The translations under genes were made by a program, and so were the position numbers. The notes under the pieces were generated by a model. That model did not search any database and was not told the DNA's origin. It saw nothing but the letters and a program-made list of their open reading frames with translations. Below, piece after piece: positions 40,446-59,957 of a stretch of 64,000 nucleotides of DNA; position 1 is the stretch's first letter, and every line of letters begins with the position of its first letter. Where the stretch lies: positions 1 to 64,000 of IMG/VR virus record IMGVR_UViG_3300027759_006101; one strand, given 5' to 3'.

Positions 40446-41300
40446 TTAGCTTACGGTAATTCTTGAAACTGCATAGTCATTGATGAGCGCAAAACCGAGC
40501 TCTTCGTAAACAACCCATCCAAGTCTAAGTCTCTTTGGATCGTCTGCTGGGAGAACAGTAATGTCTTGGCGAACTGGCATTGCACCAACGAATTGGGCAG
40601 GAGCAAGAACGTAAACACTGTTCTTTGGAACCATTGTGGAGACATGGATGTCTGCGGAATAAATATGTCCGTAGAGACCAGTCATAAGGATATCTCTTTG
40701 AGTTGCCTCATCGAAGAATTCCTTACCCCAGTTTCTGATATCCTTGTATCTTTGCGGGTGAAGAACAACCTTAGCGCCGATTAACTCGTGCTCTTCGATG
40801 AGGGTCAACGCAAGGTTGACGTTCTCTGGTTGAAGAGTACCAGAAACGGAGATTGATTGGTCAGTTGGAACACCAGCATTGATGACCTTGAAGACTTCAG
40901 TATCTTCTTGTCTTTGGAGGGAGTCCTTAGCACGGACTTGAGCTCTATCGACGATGTAGAATCTTCTTTGGCGAATCTCATTGAGTCTGATCTGTGGATG
41001 AGCAGCCAACTCAATGGTTGGAACAAGAAGCTCTTCTGCTTCAACTTCTGCAGCAGGAACAGCACCACGCTTAGGAATAACGTATGACTTTACAGCCACG
41101 TCTCTCTCATAGCGAGCTAAAGCACCTTGTGGGAGCTCATCGACCATAAGAAGCTTACGGCCAATTGCTTGGTACATAAGGGAGGTCTTGATTGGCTCAA
41201 CCATTGCTTGTGCAAGTGCTGTGCGTCCCTCTGGAGTCTCAAGAGCCATTGCAATAATGGACTCTCTTTGCTCATTTGTGTTTCTCTTAATCATTGACAT
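40446..41300 (-). CDS. Major capsid protein, HK97 fold
   Basis: 284 aa, last gene of the head operon, AGGAG SD; VVLHPQRYKDIR, GLYGHIYSADIHVS and GWVVYEELG fit the HK97 A/P-domain pattern. Confidence 0.85.
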   Translation of the reverse strand: MSMIKRNTNEQRESIIAMALETPEGRTALAQAMVEPIKTSLMYQAIGRKLLMVDELPQGALARYERDVAVKSYVIPKRGAVPAAEVEAEELLVPTIELAAHPQIRLNEIRQRRFYIVDRAQVRAKDSLQRQEDTEVFKVINAGVPTDQSISVSGTLQPENVNLALTLIEEHELIGAKVVLHPQRYKDIRNWGKEFFDEATQRDILMTGLYGHIYSADIHVSTMVPKNSVYVLAPAQFVGAMPVRQDITVLPADDPKRLRLGWVVYEELGFALINDYAVSRITVS

Positions 41301-43854: not shown

Positions 43855-46800
43855 TTAGTCAATCCAAGTAATTGAGACATCCAATTTTGATGGATCTTTT
43901 TTGCTTGTTTTTACAGATGTTCTAGAATAGTTTCCACAGCTATGGCAGAAAGTATTATTCTTTACTTTATTTGCTTTTCTATTTCCACAACTTGGACAAA
44001 TCATACCGACAGGAAGCATTTTAGATGCTGTTCTGTCAAAGTCAGGCATTGCAGTTTTTAAGTAAACATCTGAATCAACTGTTGCTGAAAGTCTAACCAT
44101 TGTCTTGATTGAGTTTGCAACTGTTCCTAAAGCAGGAGGCGCAGGAGAAGCAGCTGGAACCTCAGTTGGAGCTGTTGCTGCACCAAGGCCCATATCAGGT
44201 CCTAAACCACCAAGGTCTTCAGACTCTGGAGATTCTTTACCCTTGTCACCCATAGATATAAGCTCAATTGATTGAAGAATCTTGTATGTTGTTCCGCAGT
44301 TTTGACAATCTGCATTTGATTCAGAAATATTTACATCATCTGATCCGCAAACTGGGCAAACACTTCCCCAAGGTTTCTTTTCACCTGGCTCTGTCATTGC
44401 ATCAAGATCTGATGTTTCGTTCATTTCTGTACCAGTCATAGCAGAGATTCCTAAATCTCCGCCAATAGGAGCCATAGCGCCTAAATTAGGGTCTACAGGG
44501 CCTGCAGCAGGAGAAGCGGGAGCTGGAGCACCCATAGGAGGAGCTACTTGTGCATATTTAGATAAAACTTCATCTCTTCTATTTTTTCTAGCAATTCTTG
44601 CACCTTCAGTCATTACTACAGGTAATTCTTCAGCAATTACTTCTGCATCCGCATTTTCTTCGTCAACCTTGAAAGTTTTGGATGACATTGTTGAAACTGT
44701 TGCGGTTACATCACCATTTTCTGAAACAACTAAATCAGTAAATGAGAAAGTGTTTGGATCTACTGTAAATCCGTGACCTTGAAGAACTTCCATTGCTTTT
44801 TGTTTGAATGCTTCATCAAAGCTATCGTCTCCAGGAGACATTCCGTTCAAATCTTCAGCAACGCACATAAATCTAAGGCAATCTGATTTTGTGTGTGTAA
44901 CAGTCATTCCAGCAGTTCTGTCTGCTTCTTGTTTTGCTTCAATAGCTCTTGAAACTAATTTTTCTGCCAAATCGAAATCTTGGCAAAGTCTTTTTGCTGC
45001 TAATGCAATTTTGCGAGTTGGAATATTGAAGTTTGTTGAATAATCAGCAAGCCATCCAATCAAATTATTCTCAATTTTTTCTGCACTGGCAGTCTTGACT
45101 CCCCAAAACTCTCTTCTTGCTCTAGATCTTAATCTACCTTCAGTTGCAGTGGTGGTTTTTGCTCTATCAATTGCTGCCATAAGTTGTTTTTCTGGCATTG
45201 AGTCAACGACATCAACACCTTCACCTGGTGCAGTTCTTGTTTCTTCAGAGGACATTGCCATAGCACTAATTGCAGATTTCAAATCGTCTTTAGAAATTAA
45301 GTCACCAGCTCCGTCTACAGCTGATCTAAGCGCTGATCTGAGTTCTTCATTCTTTGAAGGTTGAGTATCAACATCAAGGCCAGTTTCAGGAGCAGCAGCC
45401 CCAGCCATCAAAAGTTCTGCAATTCTAGTGACACCTTCTTTGGTGATTTCGCCTTCTTCAACAGCAACCGAAAGTGCTTGCGAAAGGTCTTGAGCAGTTA
45501 CTTCTGAAGTTACAGCAGCGCCTAATTGTTTGAGGACAGCTGTGACTGGATTATCAACAGAAGATTGTCCAAAAAATTCTTCTTTCTCAGTATTTGCTGC
45601 ATCCATTTCTGTACCAGCAGCAGCAGTTCCAATCATTTCTGGAAGCATTGGTTCTTCAGATAAAACTTGTGCAACTCTCAAAATTGTCTTTGGAGTTTCA
45701 AACGAAGAAACAACTGCTTTGCCTAATGCTTCAATTGTCTTGACCATGATAAGTTGTGCAGGAGCACTTCCTTCAGATCTGTGCTTAGAAAGTCTATTTT
45801 CTAAAACTTCAGTTGGAACACCCTTAGTTACTTCATCAACAAGTTCAGTCAGAGATTTTCTAACTTCATCATCCTTGACTCTTCTTCCATAAAGTCCAGC
45901 TTTACCAAGTAAAATTTCCTTGACAGCTTCGGCACCTTCGCCTGTTCTTTTAGTATCAAGTTGTTGTTCTTTGCCAACAGTAGGAGCACCAGTATTTTTA
46001 GTTTTCACACCGTCTTGTAAATTACTATATGACTCACCAGATCTTACTTCTTCTAAAAGACTTTCTCTGTCGCCATCTCTGTCCTTAACATCAAGTAAAG
46101 CTGTTCTGACAAATGATGAATAATCTTTTAACAGTTCTGCAGCAACTCTTGTGCCTTGTCCTGATTCCATCATAGAAATTTGATTTTCATTGAGGATAGG
46201 TTCCCAAGAAGTTCTTTTACCATTAGTAAATCCGGTTATCGATCCATCAGTTGAAAGAACAACTCTATTACCCGCACTGTCTTCAACCTTAAAATCGATT
46301 GTGACAGCAGCAGCTAATTTTTTTCTTTGCTCTGATGCAATCTTAGCAAAATGATCCATTTGATTTCTGCTCCCCGCCTCTATAGGCTTGTTTGTTTTTA
46401 TGTTTTTATTTCTCTCATTAGCAATTCTAATGACATTTTGAATACTTTGATTGACTTGTTCTACGTTATTCAAATTATTTTTTAAACTCAGAATACTTTG
46501 TGCAAAGTTTCCAAATTTATCAACAGTTTTATGATTTGTACTTGCAAAAACTTCTCTTCTACCATCTTTAGAAGCCCAAACTAAATTATAGTTTGTAGAT
46601 GCTAATGCAACTCCACTTCCAATAGGATTTGGATTACTGAAGTTAGTCATATCCATAACTTTTCCAACTGATTCAGTTGGAGAATAATTAGCTAAACCAA
46701 TTTGTGGGCTTGCCATTTGTTGCGATGGATTTGGTTGTGCAGCTTGTGGCATACTTTGAGGTTGATTTATTGGCTGTGGTCTTTGACCACTACCAACGTC

Positions 46801-47994
46801 AACTCCATCGTCGATCATGTCTTGCATAGTAGACTGAAGTTCAGCCATTGACTTAGTGATTTTGCCTACGTGTCCTAAATCAACATTGTCTTTACGTGCA
46901 AACATATTCATTACAGCAACTTCTAAAAAGTTCAAAGAAAGATTGATAAGATCAAGAATGTTAAGGCCAGATCTTGGATCAATTCCTAAGGCTCCCAAAA
47001 CTGCTGCAACTGTTGAATTTTGATTAGCTCCCTGACCAGCTAATAGTTGTCCGCCAACTAATGTGCCTGCTTGTTGTGCAAGTCTGATAGCAACATTGGT
47101 AGTTTGATTTGCTTGTCTCAAACAGCTTTCATATGCTGTTCTTTCATTAATATTTTCAGGGATTTCTTGTAAAGCTAAAACAATATTTGAATTTATTTCA
47201 TTAGCTTTCTTTTCTAAATTTGTTGCTGCACTTAAAACGTCATCAACATCATAAATTTCTTGAATTTCACAAGACTCAAAAGCACCATCACCTACACAGC
47301 TTAATTCTATAAACTTAACTCCATAGTTTTTTTCATAAGCTTTCTTGCCGGTTTCAGGATAAGTCTTGCCTTTATATTTTTTCAAGTGCTCACAATAGTC
47401 TCTTTCAGTATAGGCTTTATTGTTACAAATGGAACAAACGCCCCACTCAACACTTGCACCCATACTTACATCGTGAATAACACCTGTTCTAATATTTCTT
47501 GCGATATCAGGATATGCTTCCTCATCTACAAAGAAAGTACAGTAAACACAGTTTTCTTTTTCGTCCCATTCAGCGTAAACAACCATTCCTTTAGCTTGTT
47601 CAATATCATCATTTTTATGATTTGTATATATTGGAACACCTTCGAAAGATTTATATGCTGGGATTTTTTGACCTTTTAATTCAACTTCTTTAAGTAATTC
47701 TTCTTTAGAAAACAAGTCACCGTTTGCATTAACAACGTCTGCATCAATTGCTCTGGCTCTTACCCAAAGTAATTTAGCACCTTTACGAGCTTGCATTTCT
47801 TTAACGATATCAAAATCTTTGTATTTTTCTAATACTTCTTTAGGATCAGCATAGAGTGATTGTAAACCAATTTTTGCTGCTTCCCTCATATTTGAAGAAG
47901 CAGTTTTTATTAAGTGCTCTCTTGCCGCAACTCTGTCGTTTTCATTAAGAAAACTTTGCACAGTTATAGCACCACCTTTTGCAACTCTATACAT
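43855..47994 (-). CDS. Prohead (maturation) serine protease polyprotein with a long C-terminal extension
   Basis: N-terminal NANGDLF...YTNH...GMV...IRTGVIHDVSMG...IELSCV assemblin/HK97-like domain; ~1100 aa extension ending in two CxxC pairs. Confidence 0.75.
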   Translation of the reverse strand: MYRVAKGGAITVQSFLNENDRVAAREHLIKTASSNMREAAKIGLQSLYADPKEVLEKYKDFDIVKEMQARKGAKLLWVRARAIDADVVNANGDLFSKEELLKEVELKGQKIPAYKSFEGVPIYTNHKNDDIEQAKGMVVYAEWDEKENCVYCTFFVDEEAYPDIARNIRTGVIHDVSMGASVEWGVCSICNNKAYTERDYCEHLKKYKGKTYPETGKKAYEKNYGVKFIELSCVGDGAFESCEIQEIYDVDDVLSAATNLEKKANEINSNIVLALQEIPENINERTAYESCLRQANQTTNVAIRLAQQAGTLVGGQLLAGQGANQNSTVAAVLGALGIDPRSGLNILDLINLSLNFLEVAVMNMFARKDNVDLGHVGKITKSMAELQSTMQDMIDDGVDVGSGQRPQPINQPQSMPQAAQPNPSQQMASPQIGLANYSPTESVGKVMDMTNFSNPNPIGSGVALASTNYNLVWASKDGRREVFASTNHKTVDKFGNFAQSILSLKNNLNNVEQVNQSIQNVIRIANERNKNIKTNKPIEAGSRNQMDHFAKIASEQRKKLAAAVTIDFKVEDSAGNRVVLSTDGSITGFTNGKRTSWEPILNENQISMMESGQGTRVAAELLKDYSSFVRTALLDVKDRDGDRESLLEEVRSGESYSNLQDGVKTKNTGAPTVGKEQQLDTKRTGEGAEAVKEILLGKAGLYGRRVKDDEVRKSLTELVDEVTKGVPTEVLENRLSKHRSEGSAPAQLIMVKTIEALGKAVVSSFETPKTILRVAQVLSEEPMLPEMIGTAAAGTEMDAANTEKEEFFGQSSVDNPVTAVLKQLGAAVTSEVTAQDLSQALSVAVEEGEITKEGVTRIAELLMAGAAAPETGLDVDTQPSKNEELRSALRSAVDGAGDLISKDDLKSAISAMAMSSEETRTAPGEGVDVVDSMPEKQLMAAIDRAKTTTATEGRLRSRARREFWGVKTASAEKIENNLIGWLADYSTNFNIPTRKIALAAKRLCQDFDLAEKLVSRAIEAKQEADRTAGMTVTHTKSDCLRFMCVAEDLNGMSPGDDSFDEAFKQKAMEVLQGHGFTVDPNTFSFTDLVVSENGDVTATVSTMSSKTFKVDEENADAEVIAEELPVVMTEGARIARKNRRDEVLSKYAQVAPPMGAPAPASPAAGPVDPNLGAMAPIGGDLGISAMTGTEMNETSDLDAMTEPGEKKPWGSVCPVCGSDDVNISESNADCQNCGTTYKILQSIELISMGDKGKESPESEDLGGLGPDMGLGAATAPTEVPAASPAPPALGTVANSIKTMVRLSATVDSDVYLKTAMPDFDRTASKMLPVGMICPSCGNRKANKVKNNTFCHSCGNYSRTSVKTSKKDPSKLDVSITWID

Positions 47995-48117: not shown

Positions 48118-50499
48118 TTATAAATATTTTTCACCATCTCCATTTGAACTTTGACCTGTACGTTTTTTAATTGCATTTATCAAGACGTTCAAACAATCTT
48201 GAGGATGATCTTGTAGCTCTTTATCAGTAAATCTAATTATAATCCAACCATTGACTGCTAATTCTGAATCTCTTCTCTTATCTTTAGCAATTTTATCTGG
48301 ATTGTTGTGCCAAATTTCTCCATCTGCTTCAACACCAATTTTCAAGTTTGGAATTGCTCCATCCAATTGATAATCCATTGTTGGACCAGCTGAATATTGA
48401 GCATAAAGTGGGAAAGGCATATTCAATGACATCAATAATCCATATAATTTCTTTTCTAAAGACGTAAACATCTTTGGTTGATTAATGTTTTCTAATTTTT
48501 TTGCAATAACCTGTCTGATAGATTCATTTTTGTTATTTGCATAATGATGCATTTCATTCATAGCATAATTATTCAATGGGTAAGAAAGCGAACCGCCAAT
48601 AAACGGTGTATCAATTACTCCAAAAAGACCATCATACTCAACTGGCAGAGGGCCTAAATTAGCTCTACCAGTAACAGGTTTCAGACTCATTAAGAAAGCT
48701 TCGTGAGCTGAAGATTTTATTTTCTTACTTGCGGTTCTAATTTTATCTGATTTATTTAAGTCGTCTAGTCTATTTTGATATATACTATTTACAATGTCTG
48801 ATGCGAGCCTATAATTTTCAAGCATAGATTTTGCTGTAGGCGCTGGAGCTTCTGGCATTGGGGCCGGAGGAGCTGCTCCAGCTGGAGAAGCACCAGGAGC
48901 TCCACCAACACCAAGGTCTGGTGCAGGAGGGGCTGCGCCCATGTCTGCACCTCCAGATGCGCCAAACCCTTGACCTGTTACGCCACCACTTTGAAAACTT
49001 AATGATATATTTGGTGTTCCAAAACTTTGGTCGCTCATAAAATTAGCGCCTTGTTCATATCTAAGTCTTTCAATTTCTTGGTCAGAATCAAGACCAAATG
49101 CTTCAATCAAGGAAACATTTGAAATTACACCATTCTGATTTGCTGTTACAAGCATCTGCAATTTGCCAGTGTCGTCTCTTAACTGCAGGTCATCAAATTT
49201 AATACGTGGATAAACAATTTCTTCTTGCCCACGTTCTCCTTCAATAACAAATCCATTCCATTTTGCAACGGGCATGAAAATATTCATTTCTACCCAGTGA
49301 GCAACTTCTCTTCGGAATGTTTCTAGTCTTTGAGCCATTGCAAGAAGACCAACTTGAGCGTTTCCGTAAGTAGGTCCTTCACCATTCAACAAGGCTTTAT
49401 TAAGCATGACACCATCAAGAATTTCTTGTTCGATAAGTTCAAATTCACCAGTCAAAGGGTGAATTTTTCCAGTTGCACCATACCACTCTAGATCAAAGTT
49501 ATGGTGAGTAACAAGAGTTAGGTTTGGATCATTCGCAATTGACGCTAATTCATCTTGAACATTGTCGATGTCTTCTTGAGATGCTGGTCTTGTATCGCTA
49601 CCAATCTTTACAACTTTGATTGGTAAAATAAGGCGTTCAGCAATCATATACTGAGCTTGTCTCAGTTTATCTTTGTATGTCAAAATTGGGAATAATGGTC
49701 TTATCATAGAGATGCCATAATCTTCCCAAGGATTTGAACCATACTTAAAGTGATGTATGGAAATCTGGTTTAATTTGATAGGATCGCCCTTGAGAATAAG
49801 TTTCTTAATTCCGTCTGGGATAGAATCATAAATATCTTTAGGATGTCTTTCGTTTACAATTCGGATTTCTTCAGCAGACGGTCTGTAAGCATAGCTACCC
49901 TGCTGGTCAATCATCCCTGGAGTCTTAATTACATTATCAGGGTTTAAAATAGAAATGGATTTCCAAGAAGCTCCATCGTGTTGACATTCTTGATTTTTAT
50001 CTTCGTCCCAGTTTGAACCGTGGCAGTGAGGGCAATCAATAGATAACAGAACAAAAGCATCACCTAATAAATGATATACTTTTGAAATTTCAGGAAGCCA
50101 TTTTTGAAAATTAAGTTTTTCTACTAATTTTTCAAAATAATCTTTAACGTAAGAAGATGAACATTCTAATTTCCAACCAGAGAATGGATAATTGGTATAG
50201 AAGTTAATTGCTGCAGAAACTTTTGGTTCATTGTTCTTCCACCAGTTTGCCCATAGATACACTTCACGTCGAGCATTTGGGATTTGAAATGAAGATGGAG
50301 TAAGGAATGGAGAATAGAAGTTAGGAGCAGTTGTGATAGAATTGATACTGGCAGATCTTGTAACACCAGGACCTAATCCTAAGCCAATACGACTACTTGC
50401 ATATGCTTGTTTTGATTCTGAAGTGGCTGTACTAGTCGAGCCTGAAACTTGTGTTGCTGCTGTTCTAATAGCAGATGCAAGAGATGTTTTTGTTGCCAT
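48118..50499 (-). CDS. Portal protein fused to a C-terminal DUF559/Vsr-like endonuclease
   Basis: Portal-like core (KVSAAINFYTNYP, YHLLGDAF, HHFKY...PWEDYGISMI, IKFDDLQL), P/A/G linker, then FTSLEKKL...QY...LDGAI...VEADGEIWH...DKRRD..L..NGWIIIRF. Confidence 0.8.
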   Translation of the reverse strand: MATKTSLASAIRTAATQVSGSTSTATSESKQAYASSRIGLGLGPGVTRSASINSITTAPNFYSPFLTPSSFQIPNARREVYLWANWWKNNEPKVSAAINFYTNYPFSGWKLECSSSYVKDYFEKLVEKLNFQKWLPEISKVYHLLGDAFVLLSIDCPHCHGSNWDEDKNQECQHDGASWKSISILNPDNVIKTPGMIDQQGSYAYRPSAEEIRIVNERHPKDIYDSIPDGIKKLILKGDPIKLNQISIHHFKYGSNPWEDYGISMIRPLFPILTYKDKLRQAQYMIAERLILPIKVVKIGSDTRPASQEDIDNVQDELASIANDPNLTLVTHHNFDLEWYGATGKIHPLTGEFELIEQEILDGVMLNKALLNGEGPTYGNAQVGLLAMAQRLETFRREVAHWVEMNIFMPVAKWNGFVIEGERGQEEIVYPRIKFDDLQLRDDTGKLQMLVTANQNGVISNVSLIEAFGLDSDQEIERLRYEQGANFMSDQSFGTPNISLSFQSGGVTGQGFGASGGADMGAAPPAPDLGVGGAPGASPAGAAPPAPMPEAPAPTAKSMLENYRLASDIVNSIYQNRLDDLNKSDKIRTASKKIKSSAHEAFLMSLKPVTGRANLGPLPVEYDGLFGVIDTPFIGGSLSYPLNNYAMNEMHHYANNKNESIRQVIAKKLENINQPKMFTSLEKKLYGLLMSLNMPFPLYAQYSAGPTMDYQLDGAIPNLKIGVEADGEIWHNNPDKIAKDKRRDSELAVNGWIIIRFTDKELQDHPQDCLNVLINAIKKRTGQSSNGDGEKYL

Positions 50500-55482: not shown

Positions 55483-55866
55483 CTATTTATTTTCTTTATC
55501 TAAAATCAGTTTGTTGCCCTTCATTATAAGCTTATCGCCTATTTTTATACCCAATTTGTCAAAAGTTCCCTTATTTGCTTCTACAACAAAAATAATCTTT
55601 GAACTTTCAGGATAAACAGATTTAGGATCATCTGCTTCCATATCTTTAATGTCTCGAATTCTGTACTTATCATCTAAAAAAGCTAATGATAATGGAAAAC
55701 TAACATTTTTATTCCAAAAAGAGTAACAGTCAGGATAATCAAACTTGAAAACGACAACTTCGAAGTTTTCTAAAGGCTCCGCAAACATTAAGCCTTTTGT
55801 TCGTAATTTGTCATTATTTGCTAAAAATCTAATTTCAAATTCATCACGGAATTTGTCTTTAGTGAG
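55483..55866 (-). CDS. DUF192-family domain whose N-terminus lies upstream of the first ATG, in frame after the UGA of the previous gene
   Basis: LTKDKFRDEFEIRFLANNDKLRTKGL-MFAEPL...FWNKNVSFPLSLAFLD...VVEANKG...IKIGD. Confidence 0.75.
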   Translation of the reverse strand, partial: LTKDKFRDEFEIRFLANNDKLRTKGLMFAEPLENFEVVVFKFDYPDCYSFWNKNVSFPLSLAFLDDKYRIRDIKDMEADDPKSVYPESSKIIFVVEANKGTFDKLGIKIGDKLIMKGNKLILDKENK

Positions 55867-56358
55867 TCAAGAACCAACTTTCTTAAATTTATTAGCAGAA
55901 GCCTTTACACTTCTTGCAGCTTCTAAATCAAATCTATCTTTAGTTCTTTGTTTTCTAAACTCATTGACATTTTCTGTTGAGAGAAAATGATCTCTAAGAG
56001 CTAATTTTGCCCTATCTGTCAGTTCTACAGATCTGCCATAGCCTGTTATTAATCCAGCTGTTTTCAATGCAAGCAAATCATTATCAGAAATATTGTTTGG
56101 AACACTGCAGACTTTTCCATCTTTGTTTAAGGCCAATTGAGACGCTGCAGTAACAAGTTCGTCAGTAGAAGCATCTATAGTCCTAAGCATATCAATATAT
56201 CTAGTGCTCAATTTAGCTGCTTCTGCCTTTTTAGGTTGTTGGGAAACTCCTAATAGTTGAATTTGGATGTCTGATAATCCAAGTCCTTCCATTGATGGGC
56301 CGTCAAATAATTCTGCGTGTAAATCTAAACTATGTACTGGTTTAATTGGTATTGGCAT
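55867..56358 (-). CDS. Hypothetical head-associated protein, possible read-through fusion to DUF192
   Basis: Start moved to ATG 56358 after an AAGGAG SD; winged-helix-like LLALKTAGLITGYGRSVELTDRAK; ends KFKKVGS-TGA. Confidence 0.7.
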   Translation of the reverse strand: MPIPIKPVHSLDLHAELFDGPSMEGLGLSDIQIQLLGVSQQPKKAEAAKLSTRYIDMLRTIDASTDELVTAASQLALNKDGKVCSVPNNISDNDLLALKTAGLITGYGRSVELTDRAKLALRDHFLSTENVNEFRKQRTKDRFDLEAARSVKASANKFKKVGS

Positions 56359-57845: not shown

Positions 57846-59957
57846 TCATCTTCTGTTCAAATTGACCATTTTTGATTTAGGCAATCTTGCGATAATTTTA
57901 GAAGTAAGACATTCAAAAGAAACTGCGGCAACACAGTCACATATGTCGTCTTTGTAACCAGACAATGCTTCGATATAGTATCTTTTGCCTTTCCATTTTT
58001 TTTGCAAGAATAAAAACTGAGTTTTTGCTTCTTGAACTTCATTTAGTGGTTGTAGTGTATTGTGCATATCTGCGTAACTACCACCTGATAAATCATAGAC
58101 ATCAATCCTGTCATCTCTAATTAATTGAGCTAATTCTGTATAGATTTTTTCTTTATATTCTTTATTAAATTGTCTCTCTATAATTGGAACGCCATAACTT
58201 TGAAGCTTTATAACTGATGATTGTGAATTCCAGTGATCAATTGAAACTTGCTTAAATCTAAATCTACGATGTAAATCAATTACATAGTCTTCAACTTCTT
58301 TTTCTTTGACAGGTTGATTTCTTGTAAGAGGATTCCAAAAATGGATATGATCTATGACAACTCTCTTAAGAGGTGTATGGTCAGGCCCAATAGTCCCATA
58401 CATTGTCTCTGTATGAGCAATGACAAGAGCATAATAGTCAGATGTTCTCGCAGGGTCAATATGGCAAAAATATTCGAAAAGACCGTCTGGCATTTCTTTT
58501 CTTTTAACCATATTTTGACTTTTGAACATTTTATCTATATCTTCGGACATAAACATAGGGTCTGATGATGAAGCACCAAACTCAGCTCCATATTGCATTT
58601 GAAATTCTTGTGGGTCTTTTCTCTTTTGCCCATCAAGCCATTCTTTATCAATGTTTGGATTAGTAAGCCAAGTAGGAAGTCTCATCACAAGAGTTGTTGG
58701 ATCTTCCTGTCTATTTTCATGCAAGTCATATAGCAATCCAATAGGGCCTTTGGGGTTGGAAAGAAGCATCATTTTGCCATCTTTACCAAATGTAGCTAGT
58801 GATGGCTTCAAATCATCATAAAGACCGTAGTCAACGCCAGAATCTGGATTATCTCCTGCCATGGCTGCAACTTCGTCCATAATAATAGACCAACAAGTAA
58901 GACCAACAAGACCTGAAGCATTACTACTACCACATCTTAGGACTAATGATCCAGCAAAAGGATTGATTTTATCTTCTGCTCTTCTGACATTTTCTTCCCT
59001 ATCGTGTTCAGTATAAAACCTCATTTCAAGTTCAGTATCTTTACCTATATATGGAGCAAAAAATGGAGAAGCCAGAACTGTCTGTTTGATTTTTGAGAAG
59101 ATTGCTTTTTTAGCCTGTTCTTCATTTCTAGCAACGTTCAAGAGTACAATCTCATCAAATTCCATTAGTCCATATCTTGCTTGTGGATGACCCATAGATA
59201 TTAAACGATATAATTCATAAAGAGCCATAGCAGATACAAGGAACGATTTGCCAGAACGTCTCCCCAGTACTAAGACTAATTCTTCAAACTTGTATCTTTT
59301 TGTGCATTTTTCTTGAACTTGCATCCTTAGTTTTGGATCAAATTCCTCAGAATACAATAAATCGTTTTCTGTTTGAAACCCATCTATTATTGGCCTTGAT
59401 TCTAATACTTCTACCTGTCTTTCAGCATCTGGATTAGTTGCTTCTTGACGAGCATATCTATATCTTTCATCTCTTACGTTACTGTCAAGCCTAGAACACT
59501 GTAAACAAGGCGAATTTACAACGTTAAAAATAGTTTTAAATTGCTTTTCTTGTTCTCTAGCTTTAAAGAAAGCAGTTTCATTTTTATGGACATAATTCCA
59601 TACGCAACCATTACATCCAGAATCTGATTTATCATCTAAAATTGTAAGACTGGTATTTCCTTCCTGACCCATATAAAAACATTTCAAAATTAATTTTTGC
59701 CAAGGATAAGGCCTTAAATTACAAAAATACGGATGCTCAATAAATGTAATAATGTCTACAATTTGGTCAGGATTGAATCTATCTTTTGCAGGTTTGGCAG
59801 GAGGTGCAACTTCTTGTCTTCTTGCTGGAACAATTTCATCAGCAAAATCATTTGCATATTCAGTATCTTTGAAAAGTTCAGTTACAGAATTGGCTTGTTG
59901 TAGAAGCTGACTTCTAAGTTCATTGGAAGACTTGACTACAGGAGTTGGTTTTCTCAT
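57846..59957 (-). CDS. terL: Terminase large subunit
   Basis: Walker A LGRRSGKS, Walker B IIMDE, LSNP coupling motif, FQMQYGAEF, nuclease HIDPA and KDDICD. Confidence 0.95.
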   Translation of the reverse strand: MRKPTPVVKSSNELRSQLLQQANSVTELFKDTEYANDFADEIVPARRQEVAPPAKPAKDRFNPDQIVDIITFIEHPYFCNLRPYPWQKLILKCFYMGQEGNTSLTILDDKSDSGCNGCVWNYVHKNETAFFKAREQEKQFKTIFNVVNSPCLQCSRLDSNVRDERYRYARQEATNPDAERQVEVLESRPIIDGFQTENDLLYSEEFDPKLRMQVQEKCTKRYKFEELVLVLGRRSGKSFLVSAMALYELYRLISMGHPQARYGLMEFDEIVLLNVARNEEQAKKAIFSKIKQTVLASPFFAPYIGKDTELEMRFYTEHDREENVRRAEDKINPFAGSLVLRCGSSNASGLVGLTCWSIIMDEVAAMAGDNPDSGVDYGLYDDLKPSLATFGKDGKMMLLSNPKGPIGLLYDLHENRQEDPTTLVMRLPTWLTNPNIDKEWLDGQKRKDPQEFQMQYGAEFGASSSDPMFMSEDIDKMFKSQNMVKRKEMPDGLFEYFCHIDPARTSDYYALVIAHTETMYGTIGPDHTPLKRVVIDHIHFWNPLTRNQPVKEKEVEDYVIDLHRRFRFKQVSIDHWNSQSSVIKLQSYGVPIIERQFNKEYKEKIYTELAQLIRDDRIDVYDLSGGSYADMHNTLQPLNEVQEAKTQFLFLQKKWKGKRYYIEALSGYKDDICDCVAAVSFECLTSKIIARLPKSKMVNLNRR

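Follow-up and report, generated by a model that had tools for sequence, protein, structure and literature searches.

In a family of uncultured freshwater jumbo phages, one in-frame UGA stop codon has been kept for a long time between a small gene and a start-less DUF192 domain. This arrangement is best explained by programmed, partial read-through of the stop, giving a 163-aa and a 291-aa product, although the case is comparative and no protein-level evidence exists. The site lies in a 64,000-nucleotide window (positions 1 to 64,000 of IMG/VR record IMGVR_UViG_3300027759_006101), which is the start of a 358-kb jumbo phage that uses the standard genetic code. The original prediction, that an in-frame UGA joins an upstream gene to an otherwise headless DUF192 domain by read-through in a leaky UGA-C context, was confirmed as to the sequence and supported as to the interpretation. 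Its description of the upstream gene as a head gene is unsupported: the gene only lies between the terminase and the portal, and its product weakly resembles a winged helix.

The locus is on the minus strand. A Shine-Dalgarno sequence, AAGGAG (56370-56365), lies 6 nt before the ATG at 56358; SD-like 4-mers precede 36% of starts in this genome against 7% of random sites. ORF1 (56358-55870) has 163 sense codons (MPIPIKPVH...NKFKKVGS) and ends at TGA 55869-55867. The frame continues for 127 codons (55866-55486) that form a complete DUF192 domain, and ends at TAG 55485-55483. The first 26 of these codons (55866-55789; LTKDKFRDEFEIRFLANNDKLRTKGL) contain no ATG, GTG or TTG, and the first canonical start in the frame is the ATG of Met27 (55788-55786). 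Pfam DUF192 (PF02643) matches residues 15-113 of the 127 post-TGA residues, covering profile positions 5-94 of 96 (E 8.7e-21, 74.3 bits against a cut-off of 27), and a search of the genome agrees. The domain thus starts before Met27. An AF2 model of the extension (pLDDT 92) places strand 1 (residues 9-16) and helix 1 (residues 19-24) before Met27, and matches the solved DUF192 structures 3m7a and 3pjy by Foldseek with TM 0.72-0.74, rmsd 1.2 A and 25-32% identity. Met27 is invariant as part of the GLM motif of the domain; a product started there would lack strand 1 and helix 1, and it is not a plausible start of a functional protein.

The function of ORF1 is unknown. Its N-terminus is conserved in all relatives and distant homologs end with the same KFKKVG-type tail, but there is no Pfam or PHROG hit, and the Atlas gave only weak leads with scores of 0.88 and below. 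The AF2 model is of low confidence (pLDDT 62, with the 83-126 region at 72-82). Only weak Foldseek hits (E > 0.1, TM about 0.3) were found, nearly all to MarR, PadR or FtsK-gamma winged helices, and a winged-helix core around residues 83-126 is possible. No cultured relative was found for ORF1. For DUF192 there were only hits of 28-33% identity, in Synechococcus phages and one annotation-free gut-metagenome phage record, and blastn found nothing. Prediction of a complex of ORF1 with DUF192 gave no answer (score 0.00), which is neither support for nor evidence against binding.

One stop-free run of 26 codons would not be remarkable alone (roughly 0.14 by chance at this base composition); it is the conservation of the run that makes it more than chance. 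About 54 distinct relatives (46 + 7 + 1 distinct junction variants), spanning at least 7 supported subclades and down to 56% ORF1 identity, all carry TGA followed by CT(C/G/A), and all keep DUF192 in the frame of ORF1. A metagenome scan in which the codon was left free added 19 family hits, also all TGA. None of these sequences has a sense codon or another stop at the site. By contrast, the terminal stop of the same DUF192 frame varies (TAG, TAA or TGA) among the same relatives. Contigs from two DNA runs and two metatranscriptome runs show no other letter at 55867-55869, with synonymous differences on both sides, and a metatranscriptome contig spans both parts with the TGA intact.

The 26-29 codons between the TGA and the Met evolve like coding sequence. 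Their dN/dS is 0.23, against 0.15 and 0.20 for the flanks, and the indels come only in multiples of 3 (-2, +1 and +3 codons). Synonymous variation is reduced around the stop. No start-like codon is conserved in the spacer: the codon directly after the stop (55866-55864, CTC in the window) is CTC, CTG or CTA, and the ATT at 55833-55831, ATT being the original prediction's example of a non-canonical start that would refute it, is GTT, GTA, GTC or ATA in relatives. More distant relatives have two separate, translationally coupled genes, in which the DUF192 ATG overlaps or follows the ORF1 stop. In three of these, L129, L211 and L213, the initiator Met of the stand-alone DUF192 protein aligns with the codon after the TGA, and L211 reads aaaATGCTAG, with the start overlapping the ORF1 stop. 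The arrangement arose from two adjacent, coupled genes; in the window's clade the ATG is gone and the two frames coincide.

A candidate stimulatory hairpin, CAAAUUC-CGUGAU-GAAUUUG (55855-55836), starts 11-12 nt after the UGA. On 46 junctions the named structure is 84.7% paired, against 21-42% for slid controls; six pairs show double changes (GC to AU, CG to UA), and 0 of 500 shuffles reach the score. Other lineages have different hairpins at the same place, 10-16 nt after the UGA. The mean MFE minimum of the whole locus starts right after the stop, and a synonymous-recoding control gives a combined p of 0.008, although it is only modest for each lineage taken singly. In the window itself the hairpin is weak and not significant on its own (-6.7 kcal/mol, z -0.77). 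RNAalifold predicted no consensus structure on the 46-junction alignment because the lineages' hairpins are out of register. A second possible hairpin, AAAGGN...NCCUUU, enclosing ATG 55788, is mostly explained by the conserved K-G...P-L residues; its only free pair is complementary in 23 of 44 sequences, and it is not claimed.

TGA is a true stop elsewhere in the 358-kb genome. Of 379 long ORFs, 80 end in TGA and 30 of those overlap the next start as NTGA; Trp is TGG at 1.1% of codons, and translation table 11 gives 93.5% coding coverage. Of 31 in-frame ORF/ORF junctions in the genome, only this one on a coding strand combines TGA with a start far downstream. No suppressor tRNA and no phage-encoded release factor were found, although the record is estimated to be 89% complete and a suppressor tRNA in the missing part cannot be formally excluded.

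Taken together, these data make site-specific, programmed read-through the probable explanation. In this model, most ribosomes that translate ORF1 terminate at the UGA and release the 163-aa protein. A minority decode the UGA, most likely with near-cognate Trp-tRNA competing against RF2 in the poor UGA-C context, and continue for 127 codons to make a 291-aa protein consisting of ORF1, one inserted residue, a short linker and a complete DUF192 domain. DUF192 has no start codon of its own in this clade, so read-through would be its only route to expression and would set the ratio of long to short form. UGA followed by C is documented as inefficient termination in bacteria (PMC5289835; PMC7026636), but TGA-C is not avoided at ordinary gene ends in this genome (12 of 80), so context alone cannot make the site special. 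The hairpin, which would sit at the mRNA entrance of a ribosome paused on the stop, may raise the read-through rate. Hairpin stimulation of near-cognate read-through does not appear to have been established in bacteria, and that a simple 3' hairpin acts here as such a signal is possible but slightly less likely than not.

Selenocysteine insertion, in which the host's SelB and Sec-tRNA decode the UGA and the hairpin acts as a bacterial SECIS, is an unlikely rival but is not excluded. The geometry is SECIS-like by loose, permissive criteria: a stem-loop of about 18 nt begins 10-16 nt after the UGA inside the coding sequence, and every lineage has a G in the first two loop positions (CGUGAU, AGGG, AGUU, GUU, AGUUC, UGGAU). 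A conserved hairpin appears to be required for Sec insertion but is not a known requirement for near-cognate read-through in bacteria. However, the UGA sits in an inter-domain linker, exactly where the ancestral ORF1 stop and DUF192 start lay, and not in a redox motif. No relative has Cys (TGT or TGC) at the site among about 54 + 19 sequences, and none is found there in the two-gene relatives. Loop and stem sequences differ strongly between subclades that share about 80% protein identity, which fits a generic roadblock better than a SelB ligand. The phage record holds no tRNA-Sec, SelA or SelB (the host being unknown), and an Rfam scan of the junction gave only chance-level hits and no SECIS family. 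If this reading were nevertheless correct, Sec insertion would serve not for catalysis but as a gate tying production of the long isoform to host selenium and SelB status, and the long product would be the first phage selenoprotein.

It is also unlikely that there is no recoding and that DUF192 is made separately, from Met27 or by termination-reinitiation at a non-canonical start (the CUN after the stop, or AUU 55833), with the shared frame incidental. The two proteins are separate and coupled in relatives, the Leu codon after the TGA aligns with the ancestral Met, and AAAGG, 4 nt before ATG 55788, could serve as a weak SD. But the frame is shared in all of about 54 junctions despite indels, where chance would give one in three, and CTC, the commonest codon after the stop, mismatches the initiator anticodon at two positions and varies in its third base. 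This model does not explain the purifying selection on the 26 codons before Met27, nor why the stop is always TGA and always followed by CT. A +1 frameshift as at prfB (CUU UGA C) was rejected because the +1 frame closes after 15 codons and is not the DUF192 frame. A stop-hop of the T4 gene 60 type was rejected because the codon before the stop (TCT, TCA, GGC, AAA or ACT) does not match the CTN after it; in addition, the residues directly after the stop are conserved as protein. Sequencing or assembly error, a recent TGG-to-TGA mutation and genome-wide reassignment of TGA are refuted by the TGA in every independent assembly, the continued purifying selection on the downstream domain (dN/dS 0.20) and the normal use of TGA as a stop; the one public gene call with W at the junction (P0001, 289 aa) translates to that sequence only with TGA read as W, its W coming from a code-4 gene call.

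The site appears to be maintained across a whole family of abundant freshwater jumbo phages, and the ancestral two-gene state can still be seen in relatives. It offers a candidate natural bacterial read-through signal, UGA-CU plus a movable hairpin, and links the uncharacterised DUF192 domain to a specific partner protein in a packaging and head gene block. It also warns that DUF192 in these phages is mis-called as a 101-aa fragment, or fused by a wrong code-4 call, and suggests that more such cases could be found among conserved in-frame stops in phage genomes.

The textbook case of programmed stop-codon read-through in phages is the ssRNA phage Qbeta and its relatives; for tailed dsDNA phages the known recoding events are frameshifts, and no read-through case in a dsDNA phage was found in the literature searched, which was incomplete. 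In Qbeta, a single in-frame UGA likewise ends an abundant short protein, the coat protein, and a minority of ribosomes (about 5%; PMC7026636) read on to add a folded C-terminal domain, giving A1, so that two products are made in a set ratio from one cistron. Qbeta is, however, a small ssRNA phage and A1 is a defined capsid component, whereas here the genome is a 358-kb dsDNA phage, the proteins are unrelated to those of Qbeta and of unknown role, the context is UGA-CU with a candidate 3' hairpin, and nothing has been shown experimentally. Read-through signals of eukaryotic viruses and genes (UGA-CUA or UGA-CGG contexts with 3' stem-loops or pseudoknots, e.g., alphaviruses and MuLV; PMC7026636 and Firth et al. 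2011 cited there) also have a UGA followed by C, usually CU, and an RNA structure a few nucleotides downstream that varies in sequence but keeps its place. Those systems work with eukaryotic ribosomes and eRF1; whether such elements act on bacterial ribosomes and RF2 is not established, and the similarity may be convergent or coincidental. The programmed frameshifts of dsDNA phages (tail assembly chaperone G/GT, T7 gene 10A/10B; reviewed in PMC5009743) are recoding events in a tailed-phage morphogenesis region that yield a short and a C-terminally extended protein in a fixed ratio and are conserved across divergent relatives, but they change frame at a slippery sequence, whereas here both parts share one frame and no slippery site is needed. 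Bacterial selenoprotein genes of the fdhF type share the in-frame UGA followed by C and a small stem-loop about 11 nt downstream inside the coding sequence, but here there are no Cys homologs, no redox context and no Sec machinery in the phage, and the loop sequence is not conserved. Finally, phages with genome-wide stop-codon recoding (e.g., TAG=Gln in crAss-like phages; PMC9523058) also have an in-frame stop inside a late-region gene of an uncultured phage, but those genomes have many recoded stops and often carry suppressor tRNAs, whereas here there is no suppressor tRNA in the record, exactly one site is present, and TGA ends 80 other genes.

The window covers the first 64 kb of a 358,269-bp IMG/VR virus record with 33.7% GC, estimated to be 89% complete by CheckV. 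The virus is a jumbo tailed phage from lake metagenomes. The in-frame stop lies on the minus strand in a packaging and head block that runs from the large terminase (57846-59957), through eight genes of unknown function, to the portal (48118-50499). The portal is followed by a 1379-aa protein (43855-47994, minus strand), two further unassigned ORFs of 562 and 217 aa, and the major head protein (40446-41300). Residues 52-243 of the 1379-aa protein match head-maturation-protease PHROGs, and the remaining 1100 or so residues are unassigned. The 793-aa portal protein (minus strand; PHROG portal families, Pfam Portal_Mu) carries a C-terminal region of about 70 aa, residues 706-777, that matches the DUF559 / MTES_1575 restriction-endonuclease-like domains (E 4e-6 and 6e-9), an unusual fusion for a portal. 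Relatives L129 (34-1152) and L210 (2413-3522) carry a UDP-galactopyranose mutase (GLF) gene two genes upstream of ORF1, the gene ending at the in-frame stop, inside the terminase-portal block; the window has a 329-aa unassigned gene at the corresponding place.

The sequence at the junction is as described in the original prediction. The ATG at 56358, preceded by a strong Shine-Dalgarno sequence, opens 163 codons ending KKVGS, and TGA follows at 55869-55867. Then come 26 in-frame sense codons without ATG, GTG or TTG, then ATG 55788, and the frame closes at TAG 55485-55483. The 127 residues after the TGA match Pfam DUF192 from residue 15 to 113 (profile positions 5-94 of 96, E 8.7e-21), so the domain begins upstream of the first possible canonical start. 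An AlphaFold model built on 23 relatives (pLDDT 92.2) places strand 1 at residues 9-16 and helix 1 at residues 19-24, both before Met27, and superposes on the solved DUF192 structures 3m7a and 3pjy with TM 0.72-0.74 and rmsd 1.2 A. A protein started at ATG 55788 would therefore lack two elements of the fold.

The genetic code is standard. Under table 11, ORFs of at least 70 codons cover 93.5% of the genome; of 379 such ORFs, 231 end in TAA, 80 in TGA and 68 in TAG. Thirty of the TGA-ended ORFs overlap the next start as NTGA, and Trp is TGG at 1.1% of codons. ARAGORN finds nine tRNAs and no suppressor or tRNA-Sec in the record, and no release factor, SelA or SelB gene is present. There are 31 places where two open frames of at least 80 codons follow each other in one frame. 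On coding strands, all but three of these have a start within 0-6 codons of the stop, and only 55869 combines TGA with a start far downstream. The other two exceptions use TAA or TAG. One, at 202816-202818 on the minus strand, outside the window, has TAA-CTT with 178 codons before and 130 after and the first start at codon 17; it is probably an ordinary 51-nt intergenic gap that happens to be in frame. The other, a TAG at 166795-166797, has a start at codon 6 and its first ATG at codon 21.

Searches of IMG/VR with the two halves and with a profile of ORF1 returned more than 100 loci. Across 46 + 7 distinct junction sequences, plus one more from a JGI metagenome, with ORF1 identity running from 100% down to 56%, the codon is always TGA. 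The next two bases are always CT (CTC, CTG or CTA), and DUF192 is always in the frame of ORF1. A metagenome scan that allowed any codon at the site returned, among its 120 hits, 19 family members, all TGA. One public protein, P0001 (289 aa; L210:4001-4870, a contig of JGI sample 3300032238), shows Trp at the junction, but its contig gives that protein only if TGA is read as Trp; the W is thus a code-4 gene call over the same TGA. The DNA has TGA-CTG and a strong hairpin (GAAUUCC-AGGG-GGAAUUC, -17.9 kcal/mol for 66 nt), and a neighbouring call on this contig (3482-3991) contains two internal stops under table 11, presumably from the same wrong code. In another relative (L216:669-689, metagenome contig Ga0102828_1032206) ORF1 seems to have an internal deletion, with ...NVNEFRK joined directly to VGS, yet TGA-CTC and the in-frame DUF192 are kept. 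By contrast, the stop that ends the DUF192 frame in the same relatives is TAG, TAA or TGA; ordinary stops do drift at this divergence, where dS is about 1. Contigs of two DNA runs and two metatranscriptome runs show no alternative letter at 55867-55869. One RNA contig of 1028 nt, from a related strain with 31 differences, spans the junction with the TGA intact and synonymous changes on both sides. Sequencing error and recent nonsense mutation are excluded.

The spacer evolves as sequence translated in the ORF1 frame. Over 40 complete relatives, Nei-Gojobori dN/dS is 0.15 for ORF1, 0.23 for the codons between the TGA and the Met, and 0.20 for the rest of DUF192. Spacer indels are -2, +1 and +3 codons, and none breaks the frame. 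No start-like codon is conserved: the window's ATT (55833) is GTT, GTA, GTC or ATA elsewhere, and a TTG just before the Met occurs only in a few lineages.

A profile search of 1.8 billion representative proteins found 87 clusters of ORF1 homologs, mostly 130-250 aa. In more distant phages the two genes are separate. In one of these, L211, ORF1 ends ...KSKYKKC-TAG and a 126-aa DUF192 gene starts at an ATG overlapping that stop (aaaATGCTAG); in L129 and L213 another gene lies between them and DUF192 has its own ATG. In a joint alignment, the initiator Met of these stand-alone proteins falls in the column of the Leu that follows the TGA, and some distant homologs of ORF1 end with the same KFKKVG-type tail. 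Thus, the TGA is the ancestral ORF1 stop, and the extension is collinear with a whole ancestral DUF192 protein. In a tree of ORF1, the 49 distinct fused proteins fall into at least seven supported subclades, and a single origin is not ruled out. The simplest history is that two coupled genes lost the DUF192 start and came into one frame, and that DUF192 has since depended on passage through the TGA.

Single-sequence folds place a hairpin 10-16 nt after the TGA in every lineage, with different sequences: (G/A)AAUUC-CGUGAU-GAAUU(C/U), GAAUUCC-AGGG-GGAAUUC, CAUCAA-AGUU-UUGAUG, GAACCUA-GUU-UAGAGUUC, AAUUCUA-GUU-UAGAAUU, UUGACAAUCA-GUU-UGAUGUCAG and ACGA(G/A)C-UGGAU-GUUCGU. For a named two-helix structure on the 46-junction alignment, 84.7% of cells pair, against 21-42% when partners are slid. 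Six pairs have changes on both sides, for example G-C to A-U, where a Lys/Glu replacement is matched by a synonymous Phe change, and C-G to U-A; no shuffle of 500 reaches the score. A selected RNA structure is considered likely, though with only moderate confidence, and its role as a stimulator is inferred. Against this structure, the window's own hairpin is weak (-6.7 kcal/mol, z -0.77) and RNAalifold on the mixed alignment finds nothing. The mean MFE of 42-nt windows over 47 relatives has its minimum for the whole locus in the window starting just after the stop (-8.4 against a mean of -4.35 with sd 1.5); a second dip near +63 is almost as deep. This dip, at +60 to +69, coincides with a possible 6-bp stem, AAAGGC...GCCUUU (55772-55797, minus strand), enclosing ATG 55788 and the SD-like AAAGG, which would disfavour internal initiation; however, the complementarity is largely forced by the conserved K-G and P-L residues, and the one free pair is complementary in 23 of 44 relatives. 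Against synonymous recodings that keep the peptide, the native sequence is more stable in 10 of 12 lineage representatives (combined p 0.008; single values from 0.03 to 0.75). Synonymous variation is reduced to 0.56-0.74 of expectation from about -10 to +10 codons. The lowest synonymous variation of the whole locus (0.30-0.36 of expectation), however, lies inside DUF192, at about 55570-55590 (minus strand; codons about 92-97 of the extension), and is unexplained.

ORF1 has no family assignment. Its model is poor (pLDDT 62), and the better-predicted core, about residues 83-126, gives only weak matches, nearly all to winged-helix proteins. The original prediction called it a head gene, which is not supported beyond genomic position. 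DUF192 is an uncharacterised fold which, besides the two structural-genomics entries, weakly matches a chain in trypanosome mitoribosome assembly intermediates. The conserved neighbourhood and the fusion suggest, by inference only, that the two proteins act together; a complex prediction of the two parts gave no answer.

Of the alternatives to read-through, selenocysteine insertion is unlikely. The hairpin geometry and a G early in every loop are compatible with the loose rules for bacterial SECIS elements. However, the site is a linker at an ancestral gene boundary, no relative has Cys there, the loops are not conserved between close subclades, no Sec machinery is present in the phage record, and the junction has no Rfam match. 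Independent initiation of DUF192 fails to explain the invariant shared frame, the invariant TGA-CT and the selection on the spacer. Bypass, stop-hop and +1 frameshift are excluded by the non-matching flanking codons and by the closed +1 frame.

The best reading, as originally predicted, is programmed read-through, which is supported by strong comparative evidence but is unproven at the protein level. In this model, RF2 terminates most ribosomes at UGA-C, a context documented as inefficient in bacteria (PMC5289835; PMC7026636), while a minority insert a residue, most likely Trp by near-cognate tRNA, and go on to make a 291-aa protein. Strict retention of TGA argues that both forms, or their ratio, matter: TGG would make only the long form, and TAA or TAG, which are less leaky, would largely abolish it. 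Recoding by stop-codon read-through is already known, but its place here is unexpected. The closest known analogue in function is the A1 protein of Qbeta, made by 5% read-through of UGA (PMC7026636, Table 1).
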